Shown here one piece after another: positions 1 through 22,653 of a DNA stretch of 64,000 nt (its first letter is position 1; each line of letters begins with the position of its first letter). The stretch comes from Rebecca billardiae RCC1528. Its lineage: Eukaryota > Protista > Haptophyta. The translations under genes and the position numbers were made by a program. The notes under the pieces are model-generated. The model made no database searches. It had not been told where the DNA came from and was given only the letters and a program-made list of their open reading frames with translations. The stretch covers positions 186,001 to 250,000 of the forward strand of contig OZ251254.1 of assembly GCA_965240325.2 (NCBI GenBank). Reading direction: 5' to 3'.

Positions 1-2104
1 TCGAGATCGACGGCGGCCGAGTTGACGATGTCCTCGCGCTGCCGCACCGCGTCGTCGCGCTCGCGCTCGAGCTCGCCGTTGAAGTGCTCGAGCTCGGTCA
101 CACGTGTGCGCAGCGAGGTGAGCTCGAGCTCGGAAGGGACGCTGCGCGTGCTGTGCGAGCGCCGCAACTGCTGCTCGAGCTCGGCCACGTGCTGCAGCTC
201 GGCCATGCGCCTTCGACCCCGTGCTGTCTGCTCGTCCGCCTCTGCCTCGGGCGTCGGCGCCACGCTGCCAGCCGAGCGCGTGAGAGGCCGCTGGCGGGTG
301 GGCGCGGCCGAGAGCAGCACGGCAGGCGGCGGCGACATGAAGGCGGGCGAGGCGACGGCAGGTGACCTCGGCGGCAGCAGCTCTTCCGCCGACCCACCGA
401 CGAACGACTGCGCCGCCGCGCCAGCGAGGAGGAGTGGCGGCGCGGGCTGGCGGGAGGCGCTGCGCGTGACCGCGGGCGACGGCGCAGCGGCAGCAGGAAA
501 GCTCAAGGCGGAGGAGGCGTTGGTAGTGGCGGGCGAGAAGACGAGGTGGTCGGCGTGAGCGGGAAGAGACGAGAAGCGGGCAGCGACGACGGCGGGAGAC
601 AAATCGGCGGCGGCGGCGGCGGCTGATGCCGCCGCCTCGCCGCCATCAGCTCGAAGGAGAGCGAGCGCGCGCGCGGTCGGTGGACGGGCGGCATCATGCG
701 GCGAGGACAGCGGCTGCGGCTGCGGCCGCGGCCGCGGCCGCGGCCGCGGCTGCGGCGGCTGCACGAGCGGCGGAGGCAGGTGCGGAGGCGCCGACGGCAG
801 CTGCGGCGGTGGCGGAAGCGACGGCAGCGGCGGCGGCCCCAACGGAGGCAGCGGCTGGGTGTCCGCGACCGCGTAGGGCATCACGGCGGCGGACGATGGA
901 TCGGATGGCGCGTCGGCGCAGAGGCCGGGCGTGAGACCGAGGACTGGAACATGCGAGAGAGGCTGAGAATGAGAATGCAGATGGGCATGCGTGGGATCGA
1001 GGGCAGAGAGATCGAGGGGGGGATGCGGCGCGACCGCGCCGTCACCAGCTGGCGCGCGACGCCATCGGGCGCTGCTCGCTGCTCGGCGAGTGGCGGTCAG
1101 CTGCTCGCGCTGCGCGCGGCGCGCTCTCCAGTCCGCGCGCTTGCGCCGTGAGACGTCGGACTCGGGCGGCGCCGCCGGTGCCGCCGCGGCGGGCGCCGCG
1201 GCAGGCGCTGCCGGCGGCGCGCCCGTGAGCTCCGACGGGCCCTTCGTCACAGACGGCGTGCGCCGCCAGCCCCGCCTCCGCCGCGGCGCATCGAGACGCC
1301 CTGCGCGCACACCTTGAGCAGCTCGCCGCTCACGTCAGCGCGCCCCTTCTCCTTCTTGAAGCGCCATGGCTGCATCAGCGCGTAGCGCTCGGCGTCGACG
1401 CTCACGCCGCCCTGCGCGTCCTGTGGCGCGTGCAGGCCGCCCTGCGCGTTGAGCGAGATCACGCCCACGCGCACGTGCGCGAACTGCTGGTACGCGCCGT
1501 CCGGATCGAGCCGATGCATCTCGGTGTGCTCGATCGAGAGCGAGTGCACCGTGTTGATCGCCGAGAGGTGCCGGTCCGTGCGCGCGCCGCCGAGCGCGTT
1601 CGCCCGCAGCGGCTTCGGGACGCGGCGCATGCCCAGGTTGAGCCACGTCGAGATGCGCTCGGGCTGGTACGAGCTCACGGTGCGCCGCGTGCGGTCCTTC
1701 TCTCGCGTCTCGTGCACGACGCCCTGGTCGTCGAGCGAGGTGAACATCGGCGAGTAGAGGGCGTCACGCGGGAACAGCGCCAGCTTGGCCTTGCGCAGCA
1801 GGTTGCCCTTCTTCCGGCTGCCCTTGATGGCGACGAAGTTGTTGACCTTGCGCTTGACCTCCGCCAGGTAGTTCTCGTTCGGCATGATCGAGTGGTCCAC
1901 CTCGCTCGCCGCCTCGCGCGCGCGCAGCATGAGCGTCTCGTGCTCAGCCGCCTTCTCCGCGGCCGCCGCGGCCATGCGCCGCCGCACAGATGCGGCAGAG
2001 ACCTTGCGCCCGATGCCGTAGCCGCCCTTCCGCTGCACCTTGACATTCTTCGGCTTCGCGCAGGAACGCTTGCCCTTGCCCACGGTAAGCACAGCCGTCG
2101 TCAT
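1..2104 (-). CDS. Hypothetical protein, probably spliced, running off the left edge; basic N-terminal exon followed by a Pro/Ala-rich and coiled-coil region
   Basis: ATG at 2104 opens the 285-aa ORF, which has coding-like codon usage. A donor AAG|GTGTGC lies at 1313/1312. A second stop-free frame runs from ~1241 to base 1 (..ELELTSLRTRVTELEHFNGELERERDDAVRQREDIVN). Frame-compatible acceptors would start the next exon at 1241, 1109 or 1100; the exact junction is uncertain. Confidence 0.55.
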
Positions 2105-2773
2105 TGCTGCGCGCGGCGAGCGCGGTCCCGCGCGGCCGTGCCAGGCGCAGCCGCAGCAAGTTAGTCTGATGCAAATTCCCGGTCACCCATGCAAAAGTAA
2201 GCGTTCCCGCTGAGCATGTGCGTGGATCACGAGTAACCCGCCGCCTGAATACAAACTCCGCGCCCCTCCATACACTTCCTGCATCCCCGCGCGCGGCGGC
2301 GTGCAGGCGGGCGCAGATTCGCACCGTGTTACGAACAGACCTAGCAAAGTAGATCGGCGTGGCGGGTCGGGACGCGGAGCGGGTGCGGGGCAGGTGGGGG
2401 ATAGGTTGGGGAACACCCGCGATTAGAGCACCGGTGGCGCAGCGGCGACGTGGACGCCGCCACACGCGCACGCACGGCGCACGCGCGCACCGGGACTTTC
2501 AACTTCGCGTCGGAGCTCTGGACGACCGTCGGTTGGTCCGAGCGGCGCGAGGAGGCTCTCGGGATTGTGGCCGGACGCCCGGGTTGAGCCGTTAACGGCC
2601 GAAAATCAATTTGTTGGAGTTTCCTTAACGGCCGCTTTAAAAAAGAAATCGTTGCTGTGACGTACTACTCGCCTACGGCGCGCGAGTCCCCCGGCCGTCA
2701 GTCGCGTCTGGTAGTAGTCCGCCGATGACGACGATGACGATACTATTGATATATTGATATTACTCGGGCCTGG

Positions 2774-3901
2774 TCAGCGGACGGGCAGACTCTGCAGGAC
2801 GACGAGCGGCTGCGCGGGATACAGCCCATGCTCGGCGTGCTGCGAGTGCTGCTGCCCCGTGTACAGCCACGGGTGCGAGCGCACGCCGCCGACGACGTCG
2901 AGCACCTTGAAGTTGGCCGACGCGAGGGCTCGGCGCAGCGGGCCGTAGATCCGGTGCGCGTTCCACACGAGCGTGTCCTGGCGCGCGTCCATGGGCGCGC
3001 CAAAGTAGAAGATTCCGCCCGGCCTGAGCATGCAGTGCACCGTCTGCATAGACTCGAGGTCGGCGGCGGGGTTGAGGGGGTCGCCGTACCGCCCGAGCCC
3101 GTCGTGCTCGAGCGAGGAGTAGCTCGCGACGAAGTCGAGCTGCCCGAGGCTCCGCGTGCGCAGCGCGTGCACCATCCACTCGCGGGGCCCCACCGCGCCC
3201 AGCCTCGCGCACACCGAGGCAGGGGAGGCCGCGGAGCGCGAACGGGTGGCGGCCGGCTCGGGGCGCGGCACGCAGGTCGTCGGCGAGTACTCCACGGTCG
3301 TGAGCGACGTCACCTGCTGCCCGCCGAAGGCGAGGATGGCCGCCTCGAGCCACGGCGACTGAGAGCCGATCACCGCGCCCCTCCCCGCGGGCGGGTGGGC
3401 GCGCAACGCCTGGCACGGCTCGGGCACGTTGTAGGCGCTGGGGCAAGCTCCGTGCTGCATGGCCTTGACGAGCTTCAGAATGGCCTGCTCACGCCACGCG
3501 TGCGGCTTGCCGCCGTCAGCGTGCTCCTCCTCGCGCGCCCAGAACCAGTCGGCGACGAACGCTCGGCCTTGGATCGTGTAGTTGCGAACGAGCGCGTCGC
3601 TGAGGCGCTCGAACGGCACCGGCGGCCAGACGGACCGGTTGAGCGCCTTCTTGTACTCGAAGAGCGCGGCGCAGTCGCGCTCGAGCGTGAGCTCGTACGG
3701 CCAGCCATGCCTCGCGGCGACAGCGCTCGCCGGCCGAGCGGCGCTGAGCCGAAGCATCGGGCCCACAGACCGCGCAGACGCGAGGACGTCGCGCTGTGCG
3801 CTCGAGTCGAGCCGGTCGAGCCCGCGCGGCATCGGCTGCGCCATGAGCAGAAGCGGCGGCAGGACGCCGGCGGTGCAGAGCACGGCTCCCGCGAGTCCCA
3901 T
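2774..3901 (-). CDS. DUF268-family (SAM-dependent methyltransferase-like) protein with N-terminal signal/anchor
   Basis: Motifs GAVIGSQSPWLEA, SYSSLEHDGLGRYGDPLNP, MLRPGG and LVWNAHRIYGPLR are typical of DUF268. The hydrophobic N-terminus starts at ATG 3901. Confidence 0.8.
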   Translation of the reverse strand: MGLAGAVLCTAGVLPPLLLMAQPMPRGLDRLDSSAQRDVLASARSVGPMLRLSAARPASAVAARHGWPYELTLERDCAALFEYKKALNRSVWPPVPFERLSDALVRNYTIQGRAFVADWFWAREEEHADGGKPHAWREQAILKLVKAMQHGACPSAYNVPEPCQALRAHPPAGRGAVIGSQSPWLEAAILAFGGQQVTSLTTVEYSPTTCVPRPEPAATRSRSAASPASVCARLGAVGPREWMVHALRTRSLGQLDFVASYSSLEHDGLGRYGDPLNPAADLESMQTVHCMLRPGGIFYFGAPMDARQDTLVWNAHRIYGPLRRALASANFKVLDVVGGVRSHPWLYTGQQHSQHAEHGLYPAQPLVVLQSLPVR

Positions 3902-6900
3902 GGCGCGCGCTCGCGCGCCGGGGGCTCTGCCGTCCGCGTACACCGCGCGTTCGCGGCCGCGCGAGTCGTGAGATGCCCCGCCGACGAAGCCGGAAGCACG
4001 CGCCAACCAAATGTTATCACGAGGCGCGGGTCGCCAGTAGGGCTGGGACAATGGCTGGGAAGTGGGAATTCGTCGTACAGTTTACTAAGAATAAGAGACG
4101 CACACAGCTCAGGCAGGCGAGATTACAGTGACCATCACGTGTCGTCACGGCTGCCCAACAGGCGTGATCACGTGACATCACGTGACGAGTCCGGCCCACG
4201 GGGGGTCCGGGGGTTCCCCCCCCGGCCGGCCCCGCCGGCCCGAGCCCGACGAAATTTTTTGGGCCTATTAATTATTGGGAGTGAATAATGACGAAATCTA
4301 ACTACTATCAGTACTGACTACGCCAGTGAGTCGGAGTGACTCAAGAAGAGCGCTGATTAGACAGCTGCACTCCGACGACTAGTCGCGGTCAGCAGCCCCG
4401 TCTTTGTTTACCCGTGCATGAGGCTCGCCTGCCGAGCCATCAACTTGGCCAGCTCGCGCGCACTCACTGCTGCCGCGTGACCCGCCTTGGCTCGTCGAGG
4501 ACCCGGCGCCGAGTCGGCGCCGCCGCCCCGCGCAGGCGCGCACTCAGCACTGCCGGCCTCGCGGGCCCGGCCGGGGGCCTGTCCGGGTGCACACCATGAC
4601 TACCGGACCGTGCTGTCACGTGACGGACCCATAAATCTGTCCCATTGCCGACGTGACGCGTCACGTGATCACGTGTCACGTGATCACGCCGTGATATCAC
4701 GCTCACGTGATCACGAACTCCCAGCCCTGGACTCACTCGCCACGCGCGGCGGCGCGGCCGTCGCGAGGGGTCCCCGCGCTTGGCGGCGACGAGAAGCGTC
4801 CGGACTCTCCTTGATGTTGCACAAAGCCGCGGGGGCGGCACGTTAAATCCGGGCGTGCCCCCCCCGCGGAAAAAGCGCTTCCTCGGTTCCTCACTTCAGA
4901 CCTCCGCGTGCTTCCGGAGGAAGCACGCGGAAGCACAGGTCCACGCTGCAAGTGACAGCAAAGTCCACGCAAAGAACCCGCCCTCATAGTACCAAGGGTG
5001 GCGACCCGCGCCTCGTGATAACACGCGCATTTGGCGGGGCGCGGGCGGAGCGCGCCGCGCGCGGGCGCGTCGGCCCGTACGCTCGGAGCCCCGGGCGAGT
5101 CCACTCCGAGCGCGCCGCGCCGCGCCCGTCGCGCCGCGCTGCGGCGTGCGCCGTGCACGCGTTCAGTGCGGCTCGGGTGCCGCGCGCCGCCGCGGAGCGG
5201 AAAGAGAGCCGGGAGCGGGTGCGCTGGCGCGGGCGGGGTGTGGAGGCACGCTACGGGAGTCTACCTCTCGTGCCGCGCGCGCGCGCCCGCTCGGCGCCGT
5301 CGCTTGGCGCGGCCGTAGGCGTCCAAGCGTCGATGGTTGGCCTCGCTGTCGAGAACCAAGCTAAAGGGGGCCACCAGGGGGCCGATGCGGGTAACGCTTG
5401 ACGAGACCGAGCACGGTGCTCTGCGGCCGCGCACATCAGGCGGGGCGCGCACGGAGTCCGCCGCGCGTGGGGGCCTCAGCCAGTACGCTCAGGCCCCCGG
5501 GGGAAGCACATGCGACCTCGCCGCGCCGCGCCCGTCGCGCCGCGCCACGGCGTGAGCAGTGCGTCCCGGTTCGACCAGGGTCGCGGCCGCGCGCCGCTGC
5601 GCGCTACCACTCTGGGGCGGATGGTGCGCGCCGCGCGCGCGGGGGCGGCTTGTGGAGGCGGGCGGTGACGGCCCGGCTCGTCTGCCGCGCGCGCGCCGCC
5701 CTGCGTTGCGTCCTGAACTCTCCGTGCTCGCAGGGTGCGGATGCTGCACGAGAGCCAATGCTGTGACTGTCTGTGACGGGCTGGGCTGGGCTGCTAGGCG
5801 GCTGCGGGCCTCCCGTGTGGGTTGGATGGATGCCCGCTGCGACGCTGGCCGCAGGATTGCGTCCTTCCGCTTTGCCTTGCCCTTGGCAGCTGCGCCACCG
5901 TTGTGTGGCATGTGCTGCCAGCGCGGCAGAAGCTGTCCGCCTGCTCGTGCGAGGCTGGCTCCTCGGGCGGCTGGATGACCACAATCGCGGATGGCTTGGT
6001 GCGGACGAGGTGGTCTTGGTCCCCTGTCTCATCGCCAGCACGTTGCGGCTGCAGCAGCCGCAGGCGTGCCTGCTTGATGGGCTCCGGCCGGCAGCCCGGG
6101 CTCCATTACCTCGCACATCTGGGCGTTGGGGCAGTGAGCTGGTGTCAGGTGTGACGCCGGGCATCAAGTCTGAATCGGCAGGGAGGCGGAGGGAGCGCAC
6201 CACGTTAACGTGCGACTCGTGCGTCAGGTGCCTGGTGACGTCTCGCCGTATGGCCACTCGGTGGGCCAACCGGCCAGTGCACGGCGCGGTTGGCTCGCTC
6301 GCAGTGCGGCGCCTGGCCGGCACCAGGGCGAGTTCGTAATATTCGTCGTATAGTTTACCGCGTATCCTATCAGCAGACGTCAGAGCCGAATGATGCATGC
6401 GCGTCAGTCAGGTTAGCCAGCACGAGCACAGCCAAGGGGAAGCTATGATGCGCACGACCCAACACGGTCGTGCTGCACAGGTGGCGCCACACGAGGACGC
6501 CGGCTGGTCCGCTTGCATGGGCCACACACCCGACCTCGACTTTCTCCTAATCCTACAGTATGCCGGAACCAGAGATCTAGAAGTTGCCGGAACCTTGCGG
6601 ATGGCCACGGCACTCGCGCACGGCACTGCGGTGGACAGAGGGCTGCTGGCGAGGACATCGTTTGCGCAGCACGGCCGGACGGCCGCGGACCATTTCTTCT
6701 TTACTGTACGGTTATACTGTCGTACAATCCGCATGCAGATTCATCGACTCGATGACGTTTACTTCCGCGCGCTCTGCGCATGGGGGACCCATGCTCGCAG
6801 AGCGGCCGGGGCGGCCGGGGCGAATCTCAGGGGCTTGAGGCGGTCACGGACGCGCGCCCCGCGGCCATGTCTGAGGGTGCGGGCGGGCTCTTTGACCAGG

Positions 6901-7433
6901 TCGGTGAGCCTTCCGCCATCGGGGCGCGCTTCATTGCGCCGCCTCGCCTCGCGTACGGCGTTCCTGTCGTGCTCGCACTGACAAGGCTGCAGCAAGCAGA
7001 CTGCAGAGCGTAGAGGGCCATCATGATTGCGTTCGGTTCCAACTTGCTCGCTAGCCACTTCCAGCCAGGTGCGCGCGGCGTGAGAGTAGACGACTAGTTC
7101 CATGCGCCCGGGCTCGTCGTGACACAGGCATGCCGATCCCTCGCCAGCCGAGATGTCGGAGCGCGTGCGCACAGGCCAGTGACAGGCGGTGCGCACTGGT
7201 AGCCAAGTGGACGCGTGTGAGCCACCATGCAGACGGCCTGGACTGACGACCACCCGCCGCCTCTCTGCGGCACGCACCAACCAGAGCCAGCAAACGGACC
7301 GCAGTGGCCCAGCTGAGCGCGCCTCGCAGCCGAGCCGAGCGCGCACGAGTCGGCCACGCAGACTGATGCGCTAAAAGCGCCTCGGACTGACCCGCAGCCG
7401 GCGACTCGAACATAGGCCGCGCGCTTCTTATGA

Positions 7434-9571
7434 CTGCGTGTACCCAAGCAGGCCGGGGCGCACGCTGCCGGCCACTCTCGTCGGCGCGAGTCGCGCCTGT
7501 AGGCTGACGCGCCGCGGCTGCGACCGCCGTGACCCTCCTCCGGCTTCGGGCGCGCTGTCAGACTCGGAGTCTGGGCGCCGCGCGGCTCGCCACCCCCGCC
7601 CACCCCTGCGGCGGCATCGAGCCTACTTGGGCCGGCGGACGCGCGGCCCTCCGCGCCTACTCACGACATTCGCGGGTCGTGCGTGTACCCAAGCGGTCCG
7701 GGGCGCGCGCAGCCGGCGGCGCTCCCTGCCCACCGAGCAGGGGCTGAGCTGTGATGATCGACCGCCCGACTGGCGCTGACTGACGATCCGCCGCGTCAGC
7801 CGCGCCGCCTAACCCGAGCAGGCCAGCAGCCTTAGTCAGCCGGCCCTTCCTAAGCCGGCGCGGGCGCGGCCCTCCGAGCCGACTCTCGAAGCCGGTGTTG
7901 TGCGTGTACCCAAGCGGGCCGGGGCGCACCGCGCGATGCCGAGCCCGCCGGAGTAGCGACCGCCGGCCGGCCGCGGTCGGCGGTTCGGAATCGGACCTCG
8001 GAGTCGCGCGTCGGACTCGACTGTGACCGGCGGCTGTGGCCATGTCATCCGAGCAGGGCTGGGCTACAAGGGCGGGCGCGGGCGCCGCACTCCGAGCCGA
8101 CGTTATTCGTGTGTGTGCGTGTACCCAAGCGGGCCGGGGCGCACGCCGCGCCGCCGAGCCGGAGGGGCGATGGCGTGCGCCCGACTGCCCGGCCCCGGCC
8201 GCGCGCTGACGCTGACAGCTCGACTGGCCTCGGCGGCAGCCGTGTGACCATCAGCAGACTATCAGGCCCGGGCTACTTGTACGGGCGCGGGCGCGGCACC
8301 CCGAGCCGACTCTCGATCGGTGTTGTGCGTGTACCCAAGCGGGCCGGGGCGCACCGCGCGATGCCGAGCCCGCCGGAGTAGCGACCGCCGGCCGGCCGCG
8401 GTCGGCGGTTCGGAATCGGACCTCGGAGTCGCGCGTCGGACTCGACTGTGACCGGCGGCTGTGGCCATGTCATCCGAGCAGGGCTGGGCTACAAGGGCGG
8501 GCGCGGGCGCCGCACTCCGAGCCGACGTTATTCGTGTGTGTGCGTGTACCCAAGCGGGCCGGGGCGCACCGCGCGATGCCGAGCCCGCCGGAGTAGCGAC
8601 CGCCGGCCGGCCGCGGTCGGCGGTTCGGAATCGGAGTCGCGCGTGACTTGACTGTGACCGGCGGCTGTGGCCATGTCATCCGAGCAGGGCTGGGCTACAA
8701 GGGCGGGCGCGGGCGCCGCACTCCGAGCCGACGTTATTCGTGTGTGTGCGTGTACCCAAGCGGGCCGGGGCGCACCGCGCGATGCCGAGCCCGCCGGAGT
8801 AGCGACCGCCGGCCGGCCGCGGTCGGCGGTTCGGAATCGGAGTCGCGCGTGACTTGACGGTGACCGGCGGCTGTGGCCATGTCATCCGAGCAGGGCTGGG
8901 CTACAAGGGCGGGCGCGGGCGCGGCCCTCCGAGCCGACGTTTTCCGGTGTTGTGCGTGTACCCAAGCGGGCCGGGGCGCACCGCGCGATGCCGAGCCCGC
9001 CAGAGTAGCGACCGCCGGCCGGCCGCGGTCGGCGGTTCGGAATCGGAGTCGCGCGTGACTTGACTGTGACCGGCGGCTGTGGCCATGTCATCCGAGCAGG
9101 GCTGGGCTACAAGGGCGGGCGCGGGCGCGGCCCTCCGAGCCGACGTTTTCCCGGTGTTGTGCGTGTACCCAAGCGGGCCGGGGCGCACCGCGCGATGCCG
9201 AGCCCGCCAGAGTAGCGACCGCCGGCCGGCCGCGGTCGGCGGTTCGGAATCGGAGTCGCGCGTGACTTGACGGTGACCGGCGGCTGTGGCCATGTCATCC
9301 GAGCAGGGCTGGGCTACAAGGGCGGGCGCGGGCGCCGCACTCCGAGCCGACGTTATTCGTGTGTGTGCGTGTACCCAAGCGGGCCGGGGCGCACCGCGCG
9401 ATGCCGAGCCCGCCGGAGTAGCGACCGCCGGCCGGCCGCGGTCGGCGGTTCGGAATCGGAGTCGCGCGTGACTTGACGGTGACCGGCGGCTGTGGCCATG
9501 TCATCCGAGCAGGGCTGGGCTACAAGGGCGGGCGCGGGCGCGGCCCTCCGAGCCGACGTTTTCCCGGTGTT
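7434..9571 (+). repeat. Tandem array of ~10 units (206-245 bp), each starting with the 5' end of the adjacent tRNA-Ser
   Basis: GTGCGTGTACCCAAGC(GG) starts at ~7434 (partial), 7679, 7900, 8115, 8325, 8540, 8746, 8952, 9159 and 9365, then at 9572 as the true tRNA. Units from 8540 on are near-identical, with 206-207 bp spacing. Confidence 0.95.
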
Positions 9572-9653
9572 GTGCGTGTACCCAAGCGGTCACGGGGCTT
9601 GATTGCTAATCAAGTGTGCTCTGCACGCGTAGGTTCGAATCCTGCCACGCACG
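9572..9653 (+). tRNA. tRNA-Ser (anticodon GCT), 82 nt, long variable arm
   Basis: Acceptor stem GTGCGTG/CACGCAC with discriminator G. D-arm CCC..GGG. Anticodon arm CTTGA-TTGCTAA-TCAAG (GCT at 9605-9607). Variable arm GTGC-TCT-GCAC. T-arm GTAGG-TTCGAAT-CCTGC. Confidence 0.95.
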
Positions 9654-9679
9654 CTTTGCGCGCGCGGTGACTGCTGTGC

Positions 9680-9685
9680 TTTTTT
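9680..9685 (+). terminator. Pol III oligo(T) terminator of tRNA-Ser
   Basis: T6 run 27 nt after the tRNA, with a second T5 run at ~9705-9709. Confidence 0.6.
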
Positions 9686-9987
9686 GTGGCGCGCGCGTGC
9701 GTGCTTTTTGTGACGCGCGCGCGCGCCGCGCGCGCCGTCGTGCGCACGCCATCTTGCGGCGCCCGGGCGTGGCGCGCACGCCGCGCAGGCGCGAGACGCG
9801 TCGAGTGCACACGCCGGAGGAGCAGGCCGAGGAGCGCGGCGGAGGAGGCACGACGAACCTCGGACGTCGGAGGCCATGCAGCGGCACCGATCCGCGAGCA
9901 TCAGTCGAGCATCAGCAGCGCGTCGGCCCGAGCCCCACCGTGCGCCCCCGCGACCCACCGCCGTGGAGCGCGCGCATTGCGGCGGCG

Positions 9988-10560
9988 TCAGCCGAGCACG
10001 CCGCGCGCGAGCCGCAGCGCCTCGCGCAGCCGGCGCGCGGGCAGGTCGGCGACCACGTCGGCGTCGAGCCCCGCGGCGCGCAGCGCGTCGGCGGCGCGCG
10101 CGCACGCCTTCGCCGGCGCGCGCAGCACCGGCGCCACGCCGCGCGCCTCGACGGTCGCGACGGCGGCCGCCGCCTCGTCCGCGCCCACGCCGAGCGCGCG
10201 CGCGAGCGCGGCGCGCGCCGAGTCGGCCGTGTTGCGCGCGTCGTCGCGGAGCAGCACGACGGCGCGCTGCGCGGCCTCGGCGTGCGCGCCGCGCCGCTCC
10301 TCCACCTCCAGCCCGTACCGCCGCAGCTCCGCCGCCGCCGCGCGCGCGAGCGGCGCGGCGGCCTCGAGCACGACCGCCTCGCCGCGCGCGTCCGCCTCCG
10401 CCGCCGCGGCGGCCGCGTGGCGCGGCGCGAGGCCCGTCGCCGCGACGAGCGCGCCGAGGACGACGTCGATCGACGCTTCGCTGTTGTGCAGCACGACCGC
10501 CACCGGCTCCGCCGTCGCCGACGCCGCGCCGAGCGCGAGCGCGACGAGCACCACCGCCAT
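9988..10560 (-). CDS. Signal-peptide protein with two tandem ClpS-like domains
   Basis: Signal MAVVLVALALGAASA. Repeat 1: VVLHNSEASIDVVLGALVAATGL..AEADARGEAVV..LRRYGLEVEE. Repeat 2: VVLLRDDARNTADSARAALARALGV..ATVEARGVAPV..LRAAGLDADVV. Both follow the ClpS core pattern. Confidence 0.65.
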   Translation of the reverse strand: MAVVLVALALGAASATAEPVAVVLHNSEASIDVVLGALVAATGLAPRHAAAAAAEADARGEAVVLEAAAPLARAAAAELRRYGLEVEERRGAHAEAAQRAVVLLRDDARNTADSARAALARALGVGADEAAAAVATVEARGVAPVLRAPAKACARAADALRAAGLDADVVADLPARRLREALRLARGVLG

Positions 10561-11537
10561 CGTGATCGCCACGCGTCTCTTCGCGATGTCCGCCGCTCCA
10601 GGACTGCGGGAAAAGTCCGGCTGCCAAGCAGTGCCTCGGCCTGCCGGCCTGGCTCGGGGGACGGCTGCCGTGGCGGCGGTGGGTGCGTGCTCGCCGAGCG
10701 TCCTAGCGGTCGATTGCGGGGCGTTCCGTGGCGGCACGCTGGGCGGGGCGGGCCCCAAGACGTAGGGGAACGTCGACAAAGCAGCCCGCTGATGTCTCTC
10801 CTCGCTCGTCGCCCTTGCGGTTGGCGCGCGCAACCACTTGCGGGCTTGAGCTTGTGCCGAGCGGTCACTTCCTGCCAGCCGACTCGACATGTGGGGAGCC
10901 TGGGCGCGATGAGATGGCTCGGGGAGGTGGGGGTATGTAAGCACAATGTATACGTACACGCGCGCTGGACTTCCGACCCCGCACGCCGCCTGAAAGAGGT
11001 CACGTTAGGCACGCGTCGCGCTCTCGCGTTTCAAACGGTGTGTGCCGCACGACATTTCCAGAGTCACGGATCACTGATCGAGCTGCTTTCCTGGTCGCCC
11101 ATAGCACAGACAAGCCTACCCGACTAGCCCCATGCGTGACGGCCGGGTCTTGAGTGCTATGGCACCACTTGTAGCAGCTTCTTGCACGCTGGGCACTGCC
11201 ACAAGCGCCGCGAGCCAGCTTCGTGAGCATTTGAACGCAGACACAAGGTGCGGAGGCAGTCTTCAGGGCGTGGCAATGGCATGGGAGTCCGCGTCTGGTG
11301 TTGTACAAGCAAGGTGACGGCGCGCACACGCGCGACTACGTGCCACAAGGCCGGTGATACCCGCGAGCCGCCACGCTCACGCGCCCGTCGCTCCTCCAGC
11401 TGCCGCTTGGCGACGCCGCCCGGACTCAACGACGACACTGGTCGCGGCCTCCCGGACCCCCAGGGGGGGGGGACCTGGATTTACCCGTCCAGGGGTTTAG
11501 GAGATAAGCCGGTGCGGCAGCCCGGTGGCTCGCAAAG

Positions 11538-12272
11538 TGCAAACCATACGCCCGAAGGGGCGATGGCGAGCACTGGGCGACGCGAGGGCCCGCGTGCGCA
11601 GCGCTCCCAAGGCCGCATGCGGGCTTGACAGCCGTGCGCGGGCGCTTTGCGGGGGCGAGAACACCCGTAGGCAGCAATCGCGCCGCCTCGTCCACGCCCT
11701 GGCCGCCCTCTCCGCGCGCAGAGACCTGCCGGATGGCACGCGCAGTTCTCGAGAAGGCCTGTCCGACGAGCATGATGGGCGCGCGTGCGTCCCTGGGGCA
11801 TTCAAGGTCGGCTTTTTCGCGTCTGTGCGATGGGCATAAGGGTACTCAACATCACTGCGTCGTCGTCAGCCATGCCGACATCGGTCGGACCGCACGCGCG
11901 CACGTGACAGCTGGCAGGCCAGCAAGCGGTTGAAATGGCGGCGCGCGTGATCACAAGGCTGTCGACGAGGAGACCGCAGTGCGAGCAAAAGGAGGGCACG
12001 CCAGACATGCGCATCGGCCACGAGGCGTGCATGAAGCACGAGTGCGGGCACGACGGGCGCGACCAAAGCCGTCATGCGCCTCGACGCGCACGCGCCGCGG
12101 CGGACGACCGAGCAGGGCGCGCGCAGGCTGGCGGCGGCTGGCCTTCTTGGCGGCGGCTGTCCGGGAGTGCCCGCGCACGCGCAACGCGTGTTCAAAGAGC
12201 TCCCCGAAGGCAACGACTCCTAAGGGACGGTGCCTTTCGCCGTGCGAGGGCCCTTCGGGCGTATGGTTTGCA
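11538..12272. repeat. Perfect 22-bp inverted repeat pair ~735 bp apart (candidate MITE ends)
   Basis: TGCAAACCATACGCCCGAAGGG at 11538-11559 and its exact reverse complement at 12251-12272. AAG flanks both outer sides. Confidence 0.55.
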
Positions 12273-14799
12273 AAGCCGGTGGGCGGGGCTCGCGCTGCGG
12301 CGCGGCCGAGCTGGACGATGCACGGTCCTGCACGGTCCCCACTGGTCCCCACGCGCCCGCGCAAGACAGGGGCACGGCACGGCGAGTGCACGCCACGCGC
12401 GGCACCGCTCGTCTCCGAGCGCGTAGCTGGAGAGCGCTCGTCCTCGCCCGCCTCCGCCGGGGCCGGAGGAGCGTCGCCGCCGCGCCCGCCCAGCCTGGCT
12501 CATGCATCAACATGGCCGCACAGGTCGGCTGCAAAGCGCCGCCTGGGCGCGGCCCCAGGTGCTCCGGCTGCCGCTCCGTGTCCAATGCACCGCCCAACAC
12601 ACGTGTGTGCCAGACCGCCAGCAGCAGCAGCATTCCGCCTTCGCCCCACGATCGCGCTGCTGGGACGGACACCGGCGCCGGCGCCCCCGCGCACCACACC
12701 GCTGCGTCGCTCACTCGCGCGACGGGCGGCGCTGCGAGCTCGGCTCGGTGCGGTGCGCGCGCGCCAGGCGGCTGCTCCCCGTCGAACGGCTGTCGGGCTG
12801 CCGAGCAAACGGCTGTCGGGCTGCCGAGCAGCAGCGCCGACCTCGCGTTGGTGGCGCTGCGCGCACGGACGGCCCTGCGACCGTGGCGTTGATGCACGGC
12901 CGCTCAAGCGTCATCGTCAATGAATGATGATCCTTGGTCGGACCTCCGAAGGCACGTGCGCCGTGCGAGGGTGCAGGCAGCAGCAGGGCGCCCTCCTCCC
13001 CACACGAGGGGGCGCCCACGTGGTGCACGAGCCCGCATCGCCGCCTGTCTGCCGGCATGTGCAGCACCCGACGTTGGAGCGCGTGCACGCCGGATGGCAC
13101 CGCCGGCATGCAATCGTCGCGTGCAGGCGGCAAGCAGCGATAGACAACGAGCAGGCCGGGGCTGCGCGCCATCCATCCAGGACTGCCTCCGCCCCACGGC
13201 CAACGAACCTGTGAGGGGGGCCAACTGCATTCGCCCTCGACCTGCGCCGCCACAGCCGCACGCACCGCCCGTGCGCTGATTCCCGGCATGCGGCTGCTCG
13301 CTTGAACCACGCCCGCGCCGCGGGCCTTTGCAAATGACCGACCGCCTCTCGCGCCATGCACGCCGATCGGGCTGCGGCCACACACGCGCGCCGGACGGGG
13401 GACCAACGCCGCGCGCGCTTCGTCGACGCGCTATGCAGCGCGCGCCTTCGAGCGGGCATGGGCGGCGCTGAGCACGCGCCAGCTCGGACGGCGGCTCGGC
13501 GGCGCCAAGCCCTTGGCGGCGATGAGCGCGCGCGCCGAGTCCACACATACATGGGCGCGTGGTGGCGGCGTCGCCACGCGGCGGCAAGACGCCGTGGCCG
13601 CCGCGTGCGAGGGCGCCGTCCGTGCCGCAGCCCGTCGGGCTCCAGCGCGCATCGGAGGCGCATCAAGGCGCCGGCCGGCGCGCGAGTGCGCGCGGGCCCG
13701 CGCGGGCCGCGGCGTAGCAGCCGACAGATGCGCGCGGACGCAGGCGTCGACGTTCGCAGCATGCGCGCGCTGCCGCTCGGGGCGAGGCCAATCCGGTCGA
13801 CAGGCGGCGCGCGCGTCCGACCGACACCGACACGTCGCGGCGCCTGAGCGCGCACGGTCGCGCATCAGCGCCTCGTGGGCCGGAGGAGGTTGCCGGAATT
13901 GCACGACCCGCGAGCCCGAGCGGCGGCGTGCGCTCGCGCAATTCGGCGCGCGTGCGGCGGCCGTCGGGGCACTGCGCAAGGGGGCACCCGGCGGGCGTGG
14001 CCGCCTGCGAGCGCTCGGGCCAGCCCCGACACAGCGGTGGCATTGCCCGGACGCACGGCCGCGCCGCACGGAGTGCTGTTTTTCAGCGCGCTGCGGCGAC
14101 CACCCTCGCCGCGCTCGCTGGCGGCGCGAGGTTGATTGAGCAAGTTGGGCGCGCCTCGGGACGCCGCAGCCGTGGCCACGGCTTACGGGCAGGCGCTCGA
14201 CCGTCATCCACAGTCGCGTCGCAGTCGCGCAGACCCCAACCACGCCACGACGCTTGCGCAGCTCTCACCTAGGGCCGCTGCTCCGTGCGCGCACGCGCGT
14301 GGCGAGAGCCGCAATGCGGCGCGCACGATTGGCGGACGGGGTGCTGACGTTCGAGCTGCGCTCGCTGGCGCGCGCGCCTGCCACGCTCGCGTGGGTGCAC
14401 ACGCTTTTGGTACGCGGCGGTTTTGGCAGGCGGCCGAGCGGCCGGCGCTAGGCCCGGATGTCGGCGCCCAGAGGCTTGGCGCCGACATCCATTAAACACG
14501 CACCTTCGCCGTGTGTCTGTCTGCCGCGCGCGTGACAGGCCACGGCGGTGGGTATGATGAGGTGAACGGGGCGACCGCGACATACGTACTCGGCACCCGA
14601 CTGTGGACGCTATGCGGTTGCGCACTGGTAAGATGACGAAGCGTTTTACCGCTTCGTCATCTTACCACGCACGCGCTCGGGCGCACGGGGCCGCTCTGCA
14701 TAGCCGGCCCGCCGCCCGCTCCAGATGGCGTCGTGTATGTGCTCACCCGAACGCGCGCGTTTCAGAACACGGCTCCCGGCAATTCGCCTGGCATCGTCC

Positions 14800-16250
14800 G
14801 ACGTACACGCCACGGGCTCGCGCGTAGGGGCTTCAATATCAGCACGATCGACCTGAGGTGGTGCTATGACGCGTTGGGGCCACATGGTGATGGCGTCGCC
14901 ATGCCCGGTCGGCGGTTGAGCTGGGGATCGATCACTGGCTGGCTCTGCGGGCCCATTGCAGCGGGCCGTCAGCGGGCGTCGAGCCGAGCACGAACAGGCC
15001 TGTCGTCCATCCTCAAGCCTGCTCCTCGCAGCCACCACTAGCCCTTTGCCGCCACTCGGCATTGCGTCCAGGTATTGCCTCGGCCCGGCGGTCCGCGGTG
15101 CAACGCGGCGCCTCGTTTGGGGCCCTTCTCGGCACGGCTGGTGCCTAGATATGGGTTTCCATTCGGCCTGCTCGGAGCCCGCGCCGCCGCGATCGAGCGC
15201 TCACGCGCACGGCTGTGGTCGTGTGTGAATTCTGCCCAAGTTGCCCCTCGGCGCTGCCAAACGGGCGCACACGCACTCGCCCCGAGCATGTCACTTACGC
15301 CGATGTTGTGAGGTACTTCTTTCTCGGCAGGACGAGCTTGGCTAATTCCGATTGGAGTTCCACCGTAGGTACGCGGAGGAAATCACGATATCGAGCGTCG
15401 TGGCCCACGTTGCGCTGACGGCTGCGGCTGCCAGGCGTGCCCGGTCAACAGGGACGTCCGACCCGAGGCGCGGGTGCGTTGAACCCGCCGCTAGTCACTT
15501 GTTGACAACCGCTCGCAGCTTGCGCAGTGATTGGCTTGGCGGCTCCACACGGACCTGCCCGAGGGCGCCAGCACGTCGCGCCGATAACCGGTTGACGGCG
15601 TGCGCGCTACAGCCACGGCACGCACCCCGATGCGAGGCTACGTCGCAACGCTGGCCATCGGCGCCAGCCGTGCGCTCATCCCGAACGAAAGGGCGGCGAG
15701 CTGGTCGGCCAGCGGGCGGTTGACAGGACAGAAGATGCTCGCGATTTTCATGGCGTTGGCACGCCCGGCCGAGTTGGCAGTGGTGCGCGCGATCTGCCGC
15801 ACCGCTCTACTTTGGGCGGCGCTTCTCGTTGGCATTGCGTTCGAGCGCAGACCGATTGTCGCCCGCGGGCGGAGTCGCTGGCGGCGCCGAAATTGTCCAC
15901 GCGGATCTCTAGGCGGCCACGTTGGTCGCTGCATGCCCAACCAACCCGCAGGGGCGCGCGCCGCGATGGCTAGTCAACGATCCCCCCTTTGTGTCGCTTT
16001 GCACAGGCCCCAGAAGCTTGAGCCGTCGGTCAACGTTCACGGCACCCGAAGACCAAGCCCACGCACGGCGAGCGAGACGGCGGCGCTGCCACAACTCCAT
16101 GGCATCCTGCCGACGCGACAAAGCGGGTGCGCTGGCCGCCACATCTAACGTCTGTAGCGCGACGTGTCCGGCATGTGCGATGGTACTCCTCCTAGACCAG
16201 CCTGCCTGGAACGGATGGGTATCGAGCCTCGCTTGGCGCGAAGGCGTGCG
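14800..16250 (+). pseudogene. Possible decayed DIRS/tyrosine-recombinase retrotransposon pol (RT-RNaseH-MT) remnant
   Basis: Motif-like peptides occur in the right order across broken frames: STIDLRWCYDAL (~14840), YGFPFGLLGA (~15150), VTYADV (~15290), WLVNDPPF (~15970), LLLDQPAWNGWVSSL (~16190). Spacing is longer than canonical. Confidence 0.3.
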
Positions 16251-16968
16251 CTTGATACGTGATGGAGAGGTCTGTGGCGAGCGAACCGCTGCTCAGCGCG
16301 CCCAGGGGGACTGATTCGTCCGACGCGAGCATGAGCATGCCGCGGTCCTACGAAGACAAAGCGGGACTTGGCTTGATGGCGCGGGCGAAGCCGGTACACA
16401 TAGACATCCGGCACCAGCACGCGCGGCGCGTGTCGGGCGTGGCGCGGTGGCGATTTTTCTGCATTCCAGACGGCCAGCGTGCCAGCAGCCTCGTGCCGAG
16501 CCTCGTGCCGAGCTTGTCTCAGTGGGACACGGCGTCAAGCAGGGCTTTACGCGAGCCGGGCCAAGCACGCATGGCATAATGGCACGTGACGAGTGCAGCC
16601 GTGCACCGGAAGAGGGCACGGTGAGCTAGCGACGCGCAGGTACTGTACCCGGTCCCCACCCGCCTGTTCATCGAGCCGCACGCCGCACCGCTCGCACCGG
16701 CTCGTTGAGCACGGCGCGTCTAGGCGTTGCTGCGGCAGTCTGTGGCGGCAACCCATTCTACAGCAAGGCAGTATAGCATCGAGCGTCGGCCGGAAGAAAG
16801 CTGCCAGATCGGATATCTGCAGTCTGCTGAAGTGAATTAACTTGCTAGACGAAGACAGGCCCAGCCTCAGCGACGCCGGGGAAGCTGCATCATAGATCCC
16901 ATCATCCTATCTACGCAACGCCAACTCGTACAGTCACCACCCCTCACCGAATAATGCGCGGTTAGCTC

Positions 16969-19131
16969 TTAGACGCTTTGCGGCGGCAGCTCGAGCAGAA
17001 GCTGCCCGTCGGCGCCATCGCTCGCTTGCGACGCAGCCGAGCGAGCCGTGAGGGTGATGCGACCGTCGGCATGCAGGCAAAGGTTCGCAGCGAGCTTGTG
17101 TGCACCATTCGTCGCAGCCCCCTCGGCCGGGACGCGCACACTGGCGATCTCGTGTGCGTCGCGCAGATCGGTCGTCTCACACTCGTACAGCGCGAGTCGG
17201 CTCCCCGACGCGCTGAGGTCCAGCGCGCATGTGGCGGGAAGCCGCATGCCACGTGGGATCAGTTTTACGAGGGCCCCATCAGAGGCTGCGACGCAGATCG
17301 AGTGTGGGGCGAGGACGGCGCTGGAGATACGCGGCTGCGCAGGAGTGGGTGGGTCGCTTGCGCCCGGCTCCGCCATGGCAGCATATCGGGCACAGCCGAC
17401 GACGACCGCCTCGTCTGGCGCCGAGCAGTGAACAGACGCGTCGGGAAACGCAGCCGCAAGCAGCGCGAGCACGCGTGGCATGGCGCAGCCGCCTCCAGAC
17501 AATATGACGTCGTCCACGCCCGTGATCGCCCCACTTGCGGCGGCGGAGGCAAGCGTGTCCCGCGCGAGCGCGACCAGCCGGCCCAGCACGGGCCCAACGA
17601 TCTCTTCGACTCGAGGCCTGGTGCGAAGACAGGAAGGGCGCGAGGCGCGGTCAGAGTGCCGCCACGAGCGGCCGTCGCCACAGACGCGGGCCGCGCGAGC
17701 TACGCAGGCTGTGGCCTCTCGGCACCTGGGTCGTAGGCCGCCCGAGCCGTGCACACAGGCGGCCAGGGCCGGCCTTTACAGGTAGGCACGCGCACTGCGC
17801 GCTCGCACGTGGCGATGGCGCGCACCTTGAGAGCGACAGCGTGTAGTCGCGGTCGTCAGCGAGTGCCTCAAGCGTGAGCGCGTGCTGCTGCACGTTCGCC
17901 AGAGCCACGAGAGCTTCGTCCGCCGCGGCTGCTAGCTTTGCCAGCGCGCGCTTGTGCTCGCCGTCGTCGATGCGGACGCGCGTCCTGCGTGTGGAGTGCG
18001 GGCGGGTGGCGCCGCACGTGCCGCACGCGTGGGGAGGCGAGCGCGCCGGGTGCCGGACGGTGAGCGCGCGCGCCGGCGCTCAAGCGAGCGGGCGGGCCGG
18101 TGGGCGGTGCGTGCGACGGGCGCGCCTCGGGCGGTGCGCGCGCGCGCGCACTTGCGGTGCACGTCTTGCACGAGGTTCGCCAGCAGCAGCGCGGTGCACT
18201 CGCGCGTCGAGGCGGCCTCGTCCGCGGCCGAGTGCACGAGCGCCGCGCTGCCGTCCGGCCGGAGCTCGAGCACGGAGGCAGCGGCGTGCGACGCGCCGAA
18301 CTCGACGACGAGGCACGCGCGTGGTGTCGTCAACGCTCGCTCCGCTGGCGGCGCGTCCACCCCGTCCGCACCCACGGGCGGGGGCGCCACGGTCGGAAGG
18401 CCGAGCTGCCTGGCGTATGCGAGGGCGGCCGCGAGCGGCGTCGGCAGCAGGGTCGCGCGCAGCCCGGCGGCGAGGGCAGCGCGGCGAACGGCGTCGCACT
18501 CGGCGTGGGTGGCGCCGACGCCCACGCCAATCACCGCCTCCTTCACCTGCGCGTCCAGCGCGTCCTCCGCCGTCGAGCGCACCTGTCGCAGCAGCAGCGA
18601 CGCCACAAACTCCGGGGTGTACCGCTTGGGGGCGGCGCGCGCGGACACGCACAGCACGACGCCGAGCGAGGGCGCGGCGTCGGCGGCGTCGGGGGCCACG
18701 GCGACAGCCTCACGCACGTCCTTGGGCAGATCGTCTGGCGTCGCGTCGTCCAGCCCGAACGCCCACTGCGCGCGCCAGCGGGCGAGGCGCGCGTCGTCCG
18801 CGCGCGCGCCCAGCAGCCGCCGCACATCGGCGACGGTGTTGGCGGCGTTGCGGGCGCGCTGCGCGAAGGCGGGCTCGCCGACGAGGGTCTCATCGTCAGT
18901 GAACGCCACCACGGAAGGCGTCTTGTGCGACCCGGCCTCGTTCGCCACCACGTCCACCACGCCTGCCTTGGCGCGGCCCACGCGGCAGTGCGCCAGCCCA
19001 AAGTCGAGGCCAACGCTCACGCTCGGGCCGCTCGGGCCGCGCTTGGGGGTGTCGGAGGCAGCGGTGGCGCCACCAGCGTCTGCCGCCGACGCCTTGCCGC
19101 GCTCCTTGTTCCGCTTGCTCTGCTTGCCCAT
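16969..19131 (-). CDS. Atypical Hsp70 (HSPA14/Ssz1-like), 3 exons
   Basis: Motifs VGLDFG, VVANEAGSHKTPSVVAF, LVGEPA and VILSGGG. Exons 19131-18152, 17984-17826 and 17617-16969 join in frame via GT-AG introns. The C-terminus is short and lacks the lid/EEVD. Confidence 0.85.
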
Positions 19132-19728
19132 CGGGCAGGCGGGCGCGACGCGGTGCGCCGCGGTCTCGACACGTGCCGCTGGGGCGGAGCAGCCGGTTGG
19201 CTCGAGCCGGTATCTCAGGCAAGGCCTCGTCGGCGTCGCGCCCAGGCTGCGACGAATCCTCACGCGTGATGCTGTCGATGCAGCACGTTTTTTGTCCTTT
19301 CGAAACGATTTTCTCGGCTAAAACGTGGCCGCACCCGCACGGGCAAGGGCTGTTCAGATTGTCACTACCATACCGTCGTCACGCGGGCTCTCATCATGGC
19401 AGTATTCCGATCCCGCGACCCGACGGACCCGTCACGAGCCAGCGGTCAAGCGGGCTGCCGATCGCCCGCTGACGAACCGCGCGGCCTCCGCTGGACGCAA
19501 CAGGCTGCTGCTGAACCTGGCATCACCCAGGCTCCAGTGCGCCCACGATGGGCAGACTCGGCCGCCAGGGCGCCAAGGCCCGGCCACCCGGCGCGAGGGC
19601 CGGAGGCCAGCCCGCGACGCAGCGCCCGCGGCCGACCCCGCAGCAGCGGCCGACAGCAGCCGTCGGCAGCGGCCAGTGCGGCGAGCAGCGCGATGCCCCC
19701 GCGGCGCCCGGCGAGCGCGTGCGCGCGC

Positions 19729-20621
19729 TCAACCGGGCGAGTCGAACTCGGAGTCCGGGTCGTTCTTCTGCCGCTTGGGCCACTCGATCCACTCAGTCTG
19801 CTGCGCCGACCCCTCGGGCTGCGCGCGCGGCACGGCGCAACGCGCGCGCGCGGCGTGTGCGCGGGGGTGGAGAACTGAGCGCGCGCGCCGCCGCGTCGCC
19901 CCGCCCCGCGCCGCGCCCACGCGTGCCCGCTCGCGCCCACGCCCCGCCGCGCGCGCGCGTCGCGGCGCCGCGCGCGCCCCACCTTGTGCAGCTTGAAGCC
20001 AAAGACGCGCGGCACGTACTTGAACTTGTTCTTGGCCGGCTTCGTGTCCGGGAACGACTGCGTGAAGAGGTGCGGGAAGGTGGTGCCGAAGAAGGCGCCG
20101 TCGATGTACGTGTTGCCCGTGTCCGCCTCGTACACGTCCTCGCACAGCTGGCAGTACCGCTGCACCGGGTTGTCGCCCGACGCCGAGTACTGGTCGCCCA
20201 GCCCGACCGGCAGCAGCGGGTGCTTGTGGCAGAACGTGCGCGGGCACTGCCCAAACTCGCGCGCGTGGTACTTGGTCTTCATGTCCTGAAGGCCCTGCGC
20301 GGTGAGCACGTAGCGCGCGTGGATCAGCCCGTACAGCACGCGCGCGGTGTTCAGCACCTTGTGGATGCGCTGCGACGGGTCGGCGAGCTGCCGCTCGGTC
20401 GGCGCCGAGCCGAGGATCATCCCCATCGCCTCGCCGTACAGCGGGCCGATCTCCTCCTTCAGCCCGTACAGGTTGAAGCGGTCCTGCACGTACGCCGGGT
20501 CCACCTCGCAGAACAGCTCGTGGTGCCGCAGCAGGCAGAACCACGAGATCCACGACGGCTCGTCGAGCGACGAGCCGTCCTCGGACGACGAGTCGAGCGC
20601 GTCGTACCGGTCGACCTCCAT
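19729..20621 (-). CDS. CSNK2B: Casein kinase II regulatory beta subunit, 2 exons
   Basis: SWISWFC..HELFCEVD, DRFNLYGL, LYGLIHARY, CPRTFC..CQLC zinc finger, IDGAFFGTTFPHLF, YVPRVFGFKLH. Exons 20621-19983 and 19818-19729. Confidence 0.95.
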
Positions 20622-21432
20622 CGGAGGTGCCGCCGCGCGGAGGGTGCGGCCTCGCGCGCCTCCAGCTGGCGCGCCGGCGAGAGTCCCGGCTGGCACGAGC
20701 AGGCGCTGCGGCGACCCGACGGCAAGCGAGGTCGGCCGGCCCCGAGGCTTGCGCGGCAGTGGGCGAGTGGGCTCGCACCCGTCGGCCGCCCTGCTGAAGC
20801 CGGCTTGGCGCCGAGCCCCCGCGATGGTGCGATCTCGCGCGCCGCGAGATCGATGCAGACCTGGCCTGGCAAGTCCGAGTGGCCAAGCCTCGGTGTCGCT
20901 TTTTTCGGCCGGGGAAATTCGGCCACCGCCGCAGCAGCGTACTTTGCTACTTTCGATCGGGGATGGCGGCCGTCCACCCAAACGGCGGGCGTCCCGGGCA
21001 CGGCGTACTGAGCCCGCGTCCACTTGGTGTTGACCCTAGTCCGACCCTAGTCCATACGCATCAGTACCATAGCTAGGAACCATGCAACGCCAGCCCACTC
21101 CCCGGAGACCTCGACTCTCCATGGCATCCTTCTGGAGTCTCGGGCTGGCACGGCGCGGCCGCGGCCGCGGCCGGCGGCGAGCGCCACACGGCTGACTACG
21201 CGCAGACCGGGGCGCGGGGCTCCACCCAGGCGGCGCGGGCGGGCACGCTCGCCGGACCGCCGACGCTCCCGCGGTAGGAGACAGACGCGGTGCCAGACCA
21301 ACGCCACGCTGCCTCGCACTTGAGCACTGCGCAGCAAGTGCGAGGCAGGCCCCGCGCGTTGCTGCTGCCGGACTCTCCGCGCCTTGCTGCTCCCACTGGT
21401 CGTCTGGTGCGGGTGCGGCCTTCGGCCGTGCC

Positions 21433-22653
21433 TCATGGCCAGCTCGCCTCGATGGTGCGCATGATCTCCTCGAGGGAGCCGAAGGCGCGCGAGTAGGTGG
21501 CGACGGGCCGGCTGGCCCTGCGGTCGTGCGGGGGGCCGGCGATCTTCGAGGCGACCACCTCGAGCTGGCGCGCGCCGTTGTGGATCACCGCCCAGTGGAA
21601 CGTGGCGGGGTCGGCGAAGCGCGCGTGCGTCTTCGGGAAGCGCGCGGCAAAGTCGAAGCCGGCTGCGCGCAGCTCCGCGATCCGCGCGTCGCGCGCCGCG
21701 GGCTCCATGCGGCACGCGCGCTCCACCGGCCCGTGCAGCTCGAACTCCTCCTCCGCCGTCATGCGCATCGTGCGCCGCTCCGACTTGCTCGCGTTGAAGA
21801 GGCGGTCCATGCGCTCGCACTGCGCGCGGAACCTCGTCAGCTTGCCCTCCTCCTCGGGGCTCTGCGCGGCGGCGGGGAAGACGAAGAGGCTGACCCAGCC
21901 CTCGCTGATGCTCCCCGAGCTCCACGCGCAGCGCACGCCCCACGGGCCGGCCACCCACGCCGCCTCCGCCTCCACCAGGAAGTGCTCGAGGCACGGGAAG
22001 CGCAGCGGGCAGTAGAGCTGGTCGCCGTTGAGCGAGGGCCCGCCCTCGATCGCGCCGTGGAGCTGCTCCGCCGCACTGCCGAGGATGAGCTTCGAGAACT
22101 TGCGGCAGCGCGCGGCGGCGGCGAGGCCAGGGAAGAGAGCGTCGAGCGGCGGCGCGCCCTCGTCGGCACCGCCCGCCGGCACCGGCGCGGCGGGCCCGCC
22201 CGGCTGCTTCACGCGCGGGAAGGCGGCGGGCTCCTCGTCTGCGCCGACTGGGCGGACGTCGACGACGTCGACGCGCAGCGCGAGCGTCGTGCCGTAGTCG
22301 TACGTAAACTCGAGCTGCGAGCCGGCGCGCAGCCGCAGCTTGGCGAGCTTGGTCGACGCATCCTCGGTCTCCTCGACAACGGTGTCATCGCCCATGGAGA
22401 ACGGCCCCTGGTACTTCTTCTCGCGCCGCCCGCGCACCGTGTAGCTCCACAGGTGGTCGAGGATGCCCTCATCGCGCACCTGCTCGATGTACTCCGTGCA
22501 GAGGAGCTCGGTCACCTCCCACAGCGTGCTCGACCCCAGCGCCTCGACGGCGAGAACCTCGCTCCCGCGCCCACTCCGCTCCATGAAGTGCAGCAAGAAG
22601 ACCTCATCGGCGTGCGACTCCAAGGTCGCGCTCACCGCCTCGCTCGCCGCCAT
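21433..22653 (-). CDS. Intronless protein with an N-terminal pRiA4b ORF-3 / MM3350-like domain
   Basis: STLWEV..DHLWSY..TKLAKLRLRAGSQLEFTYDYGTTLALRVDV resembles the HL..F..L..G..f.Y.YDFGD motif of that family. Codon bias is strong. Confidence 0.6.
   Translation of the reverse strand: MAASEAVSATLESHADEVFLLHFMERSGRGSEVLAVEALGSSTLWEVTELLCTEYIEQVRDEGILDHLWSYTVRGRREKKYQGPFSMGDDTVVEETEDASTKLAKLRLRAGSQLEFTYDYGTTLALRVDVVDVRPVGADEEPAAFPRVKQPGGPAAPVPAGGADEGAPPLDALFPGLAAAARCRKFSKLILGSAAEQLHGAIEGGPSLNGDQLYCPLRFPCLEHFLVEAEAAWVAGPWGVRCAWSSGSISEGWVSLFVFPAAAQSPEEEGKLTRFRAQCERMDRLFNASKSERRTMRMTAEEEFELHGPVERACRMEPAARDARIAELRAAGFDFAARFPKTHARFADPATFHWAVIHNGARQLEVVASKIAGPPHDRRASRPVATYSRAFGSLEEIMRTIEASWP

Follow-up and report, generated by a model that had tools for sequence, protein, structure and literature searches.

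The tRNA-Ser(GCT) gene and its upstream array

The window analysed here (i.e. the whole 64-kb stretch of Rebecca billardiae DNA) carries an intact tRNA-Ser(GCT) gene, identified by both ARAGORN and Rfam (RF00005, 56.8 bits), and ten head-to-tail units that abut this gene at their downstream end (7434-9571; Table 1). The array is real. The first 15 nt of the tRNA were found 11 times, spanning 7434-9586 and always on the forward strand, against a chance expectation of 1.7 (0/100 shuffles); one occurrence stands at the first position of each unit and the 11th is the start of the whole tRNA gene. The 15-mer count and the ARAGORN and Rfam assignments confirm the preliminary description of ten upstream copies of the tRNA 5' end, the 11th being the complete tRNA.

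Table 1 Features of the tRNA-Ser(GCT) locus (positions in the window)
Feature	Coordinates	Strand	Remarks
Lone A-box-like 11-mer, possible decayed unit 0 (uncertain)	7200-7210	+	241 nt before the u1 A-box, i.e. one unit length
Unit 1 (type 1)	7434-7678	+	245 bp; oldest-looking; two changes in head nt 1-18
Unit 2 (type 2)	7679-7899	+	221 bp; head exact to tRNA nt 1-20
Unit 3 (type A with a 9-bp insertion)	7900-8114	+	215 bp; identical to unit 5
Unit 4 (type B)	8115-8324	+	210 bp; 71 % identity to neighbouring units
Unit 5 (type A)	8325-8539	+	215 bp; identical to unit 3
Units 6-10 (type A)	8540-9571	+	206, 206, 207, 206 and 207 bp; starts 8540, 8746, 8952, 9159 and 9365; 96-99 % identical, recombinant mosaics
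Conserved upstream motif of the intact tRNA (-40..-16)	9532-9556	+	
Intact tRNA-Ser(GCT)	9572-9654	+	A-box 9579-9589; B-box 9633-9641 (tRNA nt 62-70)
T6 Pol III terminator	9680-9685	+	second T5 at 9705-9709
ClpS-like host gene	9988-10560	-	tail to tail with the tRNA; synteny anchor outside the array

Four types of units were distinguished, i.e. u1, u2, u4 and type A (u3 and u5 to u10; 206-215 bp), with 59-72 % identity between types and 92-100 % within type A. The divergence of the units increases with distance from the tRNA, and the two identical units u3 and u5 enclose u4 in an A-B-A order. Nucleotides 1-18 of the tRNA are exact in nine of the ten units (u2 to u10). The likeness does not stop there, at the GG of the D-loop, as had been proposed, but reaches nt 27 (i.e. 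the whole D arm), with A21 deleted in 10/10 units and T19 changed to G in 9/10 (u2 keeps T19). Likewise, the view of a unit as the 5' flank plus the first ~18 nt of the tRNA, reiterated, holds for the copied 5' end of the tRNA, but not for the uniformity of the units, given the four types. Since the same one-base deletion is common to all ten units, all of them descend from one event. Within type A, which comprises the seven youngest units, all four combinations occur for three of the six marker pairs (i.e. the four-gamete test fails); these units are recombinant mosaics, and crossover or conversion is therefore at work among them. Units were also considered as decayed copies of the whole tRNA, and this was rejected as no match to tRNA nt 28-83 or to the 3' trailer was found in their bodies; the continuation of u1 has a 7-nt match to tRNA nt 78-84 (p ~0.02).

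Genomic neighbourhood, distal edge and search for a mobile element

In a distant relative, the transcript of the ClpS-like orthologue carries a tRNA-Ser(GCT) in the same tail-to-tail orientation, 357 nt from the ClpS-like stop compared with 334 nt here, and the position of the tRNA is therefore old, i.e. ancestral. The ClpS-like transcriptome contigs of this relative run with their 3' part antisense through the whole tRNA-Ser gene (1145-1230; 1118-1203 in two contigs). Between the tRNA-Ser at 9572-9654 and its counterpart in the relative (contig positions 1118-1203), the 3' half is 81 % identical over 64 nt, and the acceptor stem and D arm differ almost wholly with base pairing preserved (C10-G25 in Rebecca and G10-C25 in its relative), an unusually fast turnover in precisely that part of the tRNA which the array copies. 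Upstream of the tRNA, the comparison covers the 25 nt at which the relative's transcripts end. This flank weakly resembles the unit tail (p 0.03-0.04; p 0.016 for same-position 5-mers) and shows no likeness to the DNA before the first head (p ~1), which weakly suggests that the unit tail represents the tRNA flank of the host itself rather than the end of a foreign element.

At the orthologous site of Diacronema lutheri, there is no tRNA and a foldback element is present instead, so that this site is unusable as an empty-site control. The foldback element (~3.1 kb, 10730-13880 of its own contig) lies behind the ClpS-like gene and has long inverted arms and a 413-bp internal duplication; the arms hold a broken reading frame that is, by eye, IS630/Tc1-type helix-turn-helix-like. 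The casein kinase II beta gene, located 10 kb from the array, is 92 % identical to that of D. lutheri and has one apparent intron (19727-20621, reverse strand), where the D. lutheri gene (10018-12093) has about seven longer introns.

The casein kinase II beta protein is identical to one from Logan run ERR14847151, whose contig corresponds to window 14627-23497 at 99.99 %, and two further Logan contigs match window 2631-4098 fully. These matches, together with the likeness to D. lutheri, place the host among the Pavlovales haptophytes, close to Diacronema. Exact protein look-ups near the array returned flanking genes only and no Logan contig across it. An assembly artefact is extremely improbable, as assemblers do not invent four unlike unit types and recombinant haplotypes, and as the flanking DNA matches independent contigs of the same species at 99.99-100 %.

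Several other features were observed in the window. A non-coding element of ~1 kb (4012-5023) is bounded by perfect terminal inverted repeats of 25 bp; it apparently contains a second inverted-repeat element (about 4040-4730) and is directly followed by two 170-bp copies (5024-5194 and 5430-5601) that are 76 % identical and 406 bp apart. A 285-aa open reading frame (1247-2104, reverse strand) without Pfam or Atlas match is separated from the array by 5.3 kb that include a host gene, and no link between the two was seen. Further away are a (TA)87 microsatellite (58113-58287), then an exact 108-bp tandem duplication (58475-58693), and a gene with an F-box-like domain and an RCC1 propeller (62193-63692, reverse strand).

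At the distal edge of the array, the match of a junction HMM to the 7434 head does not begin before tRNA +1, and the conserved upstream motif is missing there. There are thus 11 heads for 10 bodies, as an insertion with target duplication would give, at a boundary resolved only to ~15 nt. One unit length further out, the lone 11-mer at 7200 is intermediate in sequence between the A-box of the relative and that of the present tRNA; the body of this candidate unit gave no HMM alignment, and its local alignment to u2 and u4 reached p ~0.03. Given this 11-mer, the array may simply fade at its far end.

This edge bears on a rival explanation, namely that a recombinase encoded elsewhere inserted small non-autonomous elements or cassettes one after another at a specific site, the tRNA 5' end, each of them bringing a replacement flank and 5' end that regenerated the tRNA. 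In addition to the 11 heads, an exact stretch (nt 1-18) followed by a damaged one (nt 19-27) is reminiscent of an att identity block, the conserved ends of the units enclose unrelated middles, units show the A-B-A order, unit nt 1-6 can pair with nt 25-32 in a small hairpin, and the oldest-looking unit is the farthest from the tRNA. Such insertion would predict the opposite of the weak resemblance between unit tail and ancestral host flank, and the boundary, resolved to ~15 nt, may be followed further out by a decayed unit 0. Moreover, no copy of any unit body was detected elsewhere in the 64 kb, in the fetched loci or in viral or metagenome contigs, and Pfam revealed no transposase or integrase domain in the long open reading frames scanned across the window. 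Viral contigs gave 0 matches for three array patterns, and the pattern scan of metagenomes gave one match, a chance one inside a bacterial small heat-shock-like gene. Overall, we consider serial insertion unlikely.

The preliminary description had likened this scenario to Dada transposons. These are DDE elements of 4.7-11 kb, with deletion derivatives, which split the gene, have sub-terminal inverted repeats and generate 6-7 bp target duplications at tRNA nt 8-13 (PMC3706591, PMC8869645). The array shares with them the tie to the A-box region of a tRNA and the tandem arrangement, tandem insertions being known for Dada. In contrast, a 27-nt head plus flank is repeated here, without a short target duplication, and the gene is whole; the 25 longest inverted pairs inside units included no sub-terminal inverted repeats, a search that a 7-9 bp pair could escape. 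As no inverted ends or short target duplication were found, nor a transposase in the long open reading frames scanned, Dada is not supported, and only the recombinase-driven version was retained as a rival.

Two other types of mobile DNA were compared with the array. We know of no tRNA-targeting integrative elements at eukaryotic nuclear tRNA genes. Prokaryotic ones usually target the 3' end and are kilobase elements with an integrase gene; they resemble the array in that a block of them is identical to the tRNA end, a damaged fragment is displaced, the gene is regenerated and tandem arrays occur, but here the 5' end is concerned and no integrase gene was found in the long open reading frames scanned. 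tRNA-derived SINEs consist of a tRNA-derived head from +1, an unrelated middle and a conserved 3' part, an organisation also seen in the Rebecca units. The latter differ by having no B-box, tail or target duplication and by occurring only head to tail beside the source gene, with no dispersed copies in the 64 kb. A eukaryotic cassette system is quite improbable. In such a system, a recombinase encoded elsewhere in the genome would move ~200-bp units in and out at the 5' end of tRNA genes present in single copy, and a replacement promoter on each unit would let the essential gene survive; if true, nuclear tRNA genes would possess an array of an integron-like or integrase-like nature, of which no description was found in a partial literature search.

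Conserved and diverged parts of the units

Between the four types, the middles of the units are 53-58 % identical, compared with 53 +/- 3 % for unrelated GC-matched DNA, whereas the heads are 100 % identical at nt 1-18 (89 % for u1) and mostly 83-100 % at nt 19-30, and the last 45 nt 65-83 % (p 4e-5 to 5e-3 for head versus middle conservation). Common ancestry of the middles found no support: their collinear alignment is no better than that of shuffles, and the short words they have in common are in marginal excess over genomic controls (p 0.03-0.15). When units are anchored at +1, conservation shows two peaks, i.e. the head and an upstream block, identity amounting to 33 % at -75..-56, 60 % at -55..-41, 86 % at -40..-16, 43 % at -15..-7 and 75 % at -6..-1. 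Invariant columns make up 18/25 of the -40..-16 motif versus 1/13 in the gap (p 4e-4, for bins picked post hoc); like several p-values of the array analysis, this one comes from few, related sequences and from patterns picked post hoc. A copy of the motif lies 31-36 nt before each head except the first (7434).

The binding site of TFIIIB lies in the ~50 nt before the start of a tRNA gene, and the A- and B-boxes are recognised by TFIIIC (PMC13578239). The two-peak pattern matches a TFIIIB zone plus an A-box and would point to selection on a Pol III promoter module. Two conserved blocks with a free linker between them argue for selection on protein-binding sites; a conversion gradient from the head would drop steadily, and conversion alone is disfavoured by the dip to 43 % at -15..-7, below the 86 % at -40..-16. 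Selection may be the cause of the conservation, and any function of the units is putative. The upstream motif is GC-rich and not TATA-like, which counts against a promoter module. Furthermore, no B-box was found within one mismatch at a fitting place in any unit (0/10), and the unit A-box nearest to the tRNA B-box is 261 nt away from it (54 within the tRNA), those of other units being further; the loading of TFIIIC on the units is therefore doubtful.

The same profile bears on a functionless minisatellite, in which the Pol III complex would block replication forks, breaks would seed duplication, short conversion tracts would keep the junctions alike and the middles would decay. TFIIIB acts as an asymmetric replication fork block at yeast tRNA genes (10.1101/2020.01.29.925644), which favours this explanation, as do the recombination among type A units, the greater divergence of units further from the tRNA, the richness of the host genome in minisatellites, and the lack of a B-box and of a conserved RNA fold in the units. 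The gradient that it predicts should fall steadily from the head and does not, exact heads lie beside saturated middles, and the A-box may persist one unit further out (7200), where everything else is lost. We regard this explanation as somewhat unlikely.

It had also been proposed that the locus produces 5'-tRNA-fragment RNAs, and we extended this proposal to unit-length (~200 nt) leaders cut from Pol III read-through transcripts. Some E. coli tRNA-linked repeats (TLRs), the rRNA-linked ones, are transcribed and processed at their repeated end (PMC8144298), the heads can form an acceptor-like mini-hairpin, and a T4 is present at nt 195 of u7, u8 and u10. This T4 is absent from the other seven units, and no T-run that could act as terminator occurs near +18..+30. 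A structured RNA in the units was rejected on the basis of a whole-unit fold z of 0.11 and the lack of an Rfam family, no conserved fold being found; as the middles are not conserved, the units have no conserved RNA body. Production of small RNAs is very improbable.

Relation to known repeats and interpretation of the array

TLRs of E. coli have been a puzzle since 1978. The 22 TLRs are spread over ten loci; the tRNA or rRNA gene upstream of each has a 3' end that is repeated exactly in the last 18-19 bp of the TLR, and their function is largely obscure (PMC8144298). We checked the tyrT-tyrV locus, which has three units of 178 bp. The final 19 nt recur unchanged in each of the six places, and body identity is 94-95 % inside the array and 67-71 % against the tyrT-linked copy. 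TLRs and the Rebecca array are alike in their tandem non-coding units of ~180-240 bp beside one intact tRNA gene and in the combination of an exact gene end of 18-19 nt per unit (here nt 1-18, in 9/10 units) with diverged bodies. In contrast, TLRs are downstream, inside an operon, and copy the 3' end (a processing signal), whereas the Rebecca units are upstream and copy the 5' end and the upstream promoter zone; the latter array is also eukaryotic, concerns Pol III, and comprises ten units with four types of bodies. Because it copies the 5' end, and does so upstream, it is a mirror-image analogue of TLRs rather than a member of the group. The statement that no standard feature type exists for such an arrangement was thus overstated, as TLRs represent the equivalent design on the 3' side. 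A literature search of partial coverage found no description of 5'-side tRNA-linked arrays, a weak sign of novelty.

The rDNA spacer promoters of Pol I (Xenopus, Drosophila, mammals; PMC12326227) are also tandem, same-orientation copies of a promoter upstream of the true one, with a conserved promoter part and a variable spacer. In the Rebecca array, the upstream zone and the A-box are likewise kept over the spacer, but the gene concerned belongs to Pol III and its promoter is internal. The units copy just the A-box half of this promoter, so that none of the ten has a complete one; the tRNA-Ser is also a single gene and not a gene array, and any promoter activity of the units is putative. To our knowledge, spacer promoters are known only for Pol I. 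Among the origins suggested in the preliminary description, duplication of a Pol III promoter in the manner of spacer promoters fits best, with conservation confined to -40..-16 and to the A-box and D arm, with the reservation that the B-box was not copied.

We tentatively interpret the locus, at slightly less than even confidence, as a tRNA-linked repeat array on the 5' side of the gene, built from duplicates of a Pol III promoter module, in which selection would keep the TFIIIB zone and the A-box. The array would have originated from one tandem duplication of the ~190-bp 5' flank and tRNA nt 1-27, ending at the D arm. Its growth and reshuffling by unequal crossover or conversion between conserved junctions, seen in type A units, may extend to the others. 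Polarity and A-B-A order would both be explained, as one intact tRNA remains downstream after any crossover within nt 1-18; two such crossovers could yield the A-B-A order. The units would then be maintained by purifying selection on the -40..-16 TFIIIB zone and the A-box, with the intervening 110-145 bp drifting to saturation. In a weaker form, the tail would be selected only while crossover has it adjoining the tRNA. Units could act as B-box-less spacer promoters or as landing pads for factors, setting the output of the tRNA gene or its chromatin state, in a lineage with few tRNA genes (D. lutheri has fewer than 60 nuclear ones).

What is new here is an array with units of four types, whose middles are like unrelated DNA and in which nt 1-18 and the -40..-16 block are kept with a variable gap between them. 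It represents a eukaryotic, promoter-side version of TLRs in which the TFIIIB zone and the A-box seem to be the only parts preserved by selection, and its old, diverged units expose the parts of the module that are kept. If the promoter-module reading is true, upstream promoter arrays can arise at a single-copy Pol III gene, perhaps instead of added gene copies, and the array would map the Pol III upstream element of haptophytes by natural mutagenesis.
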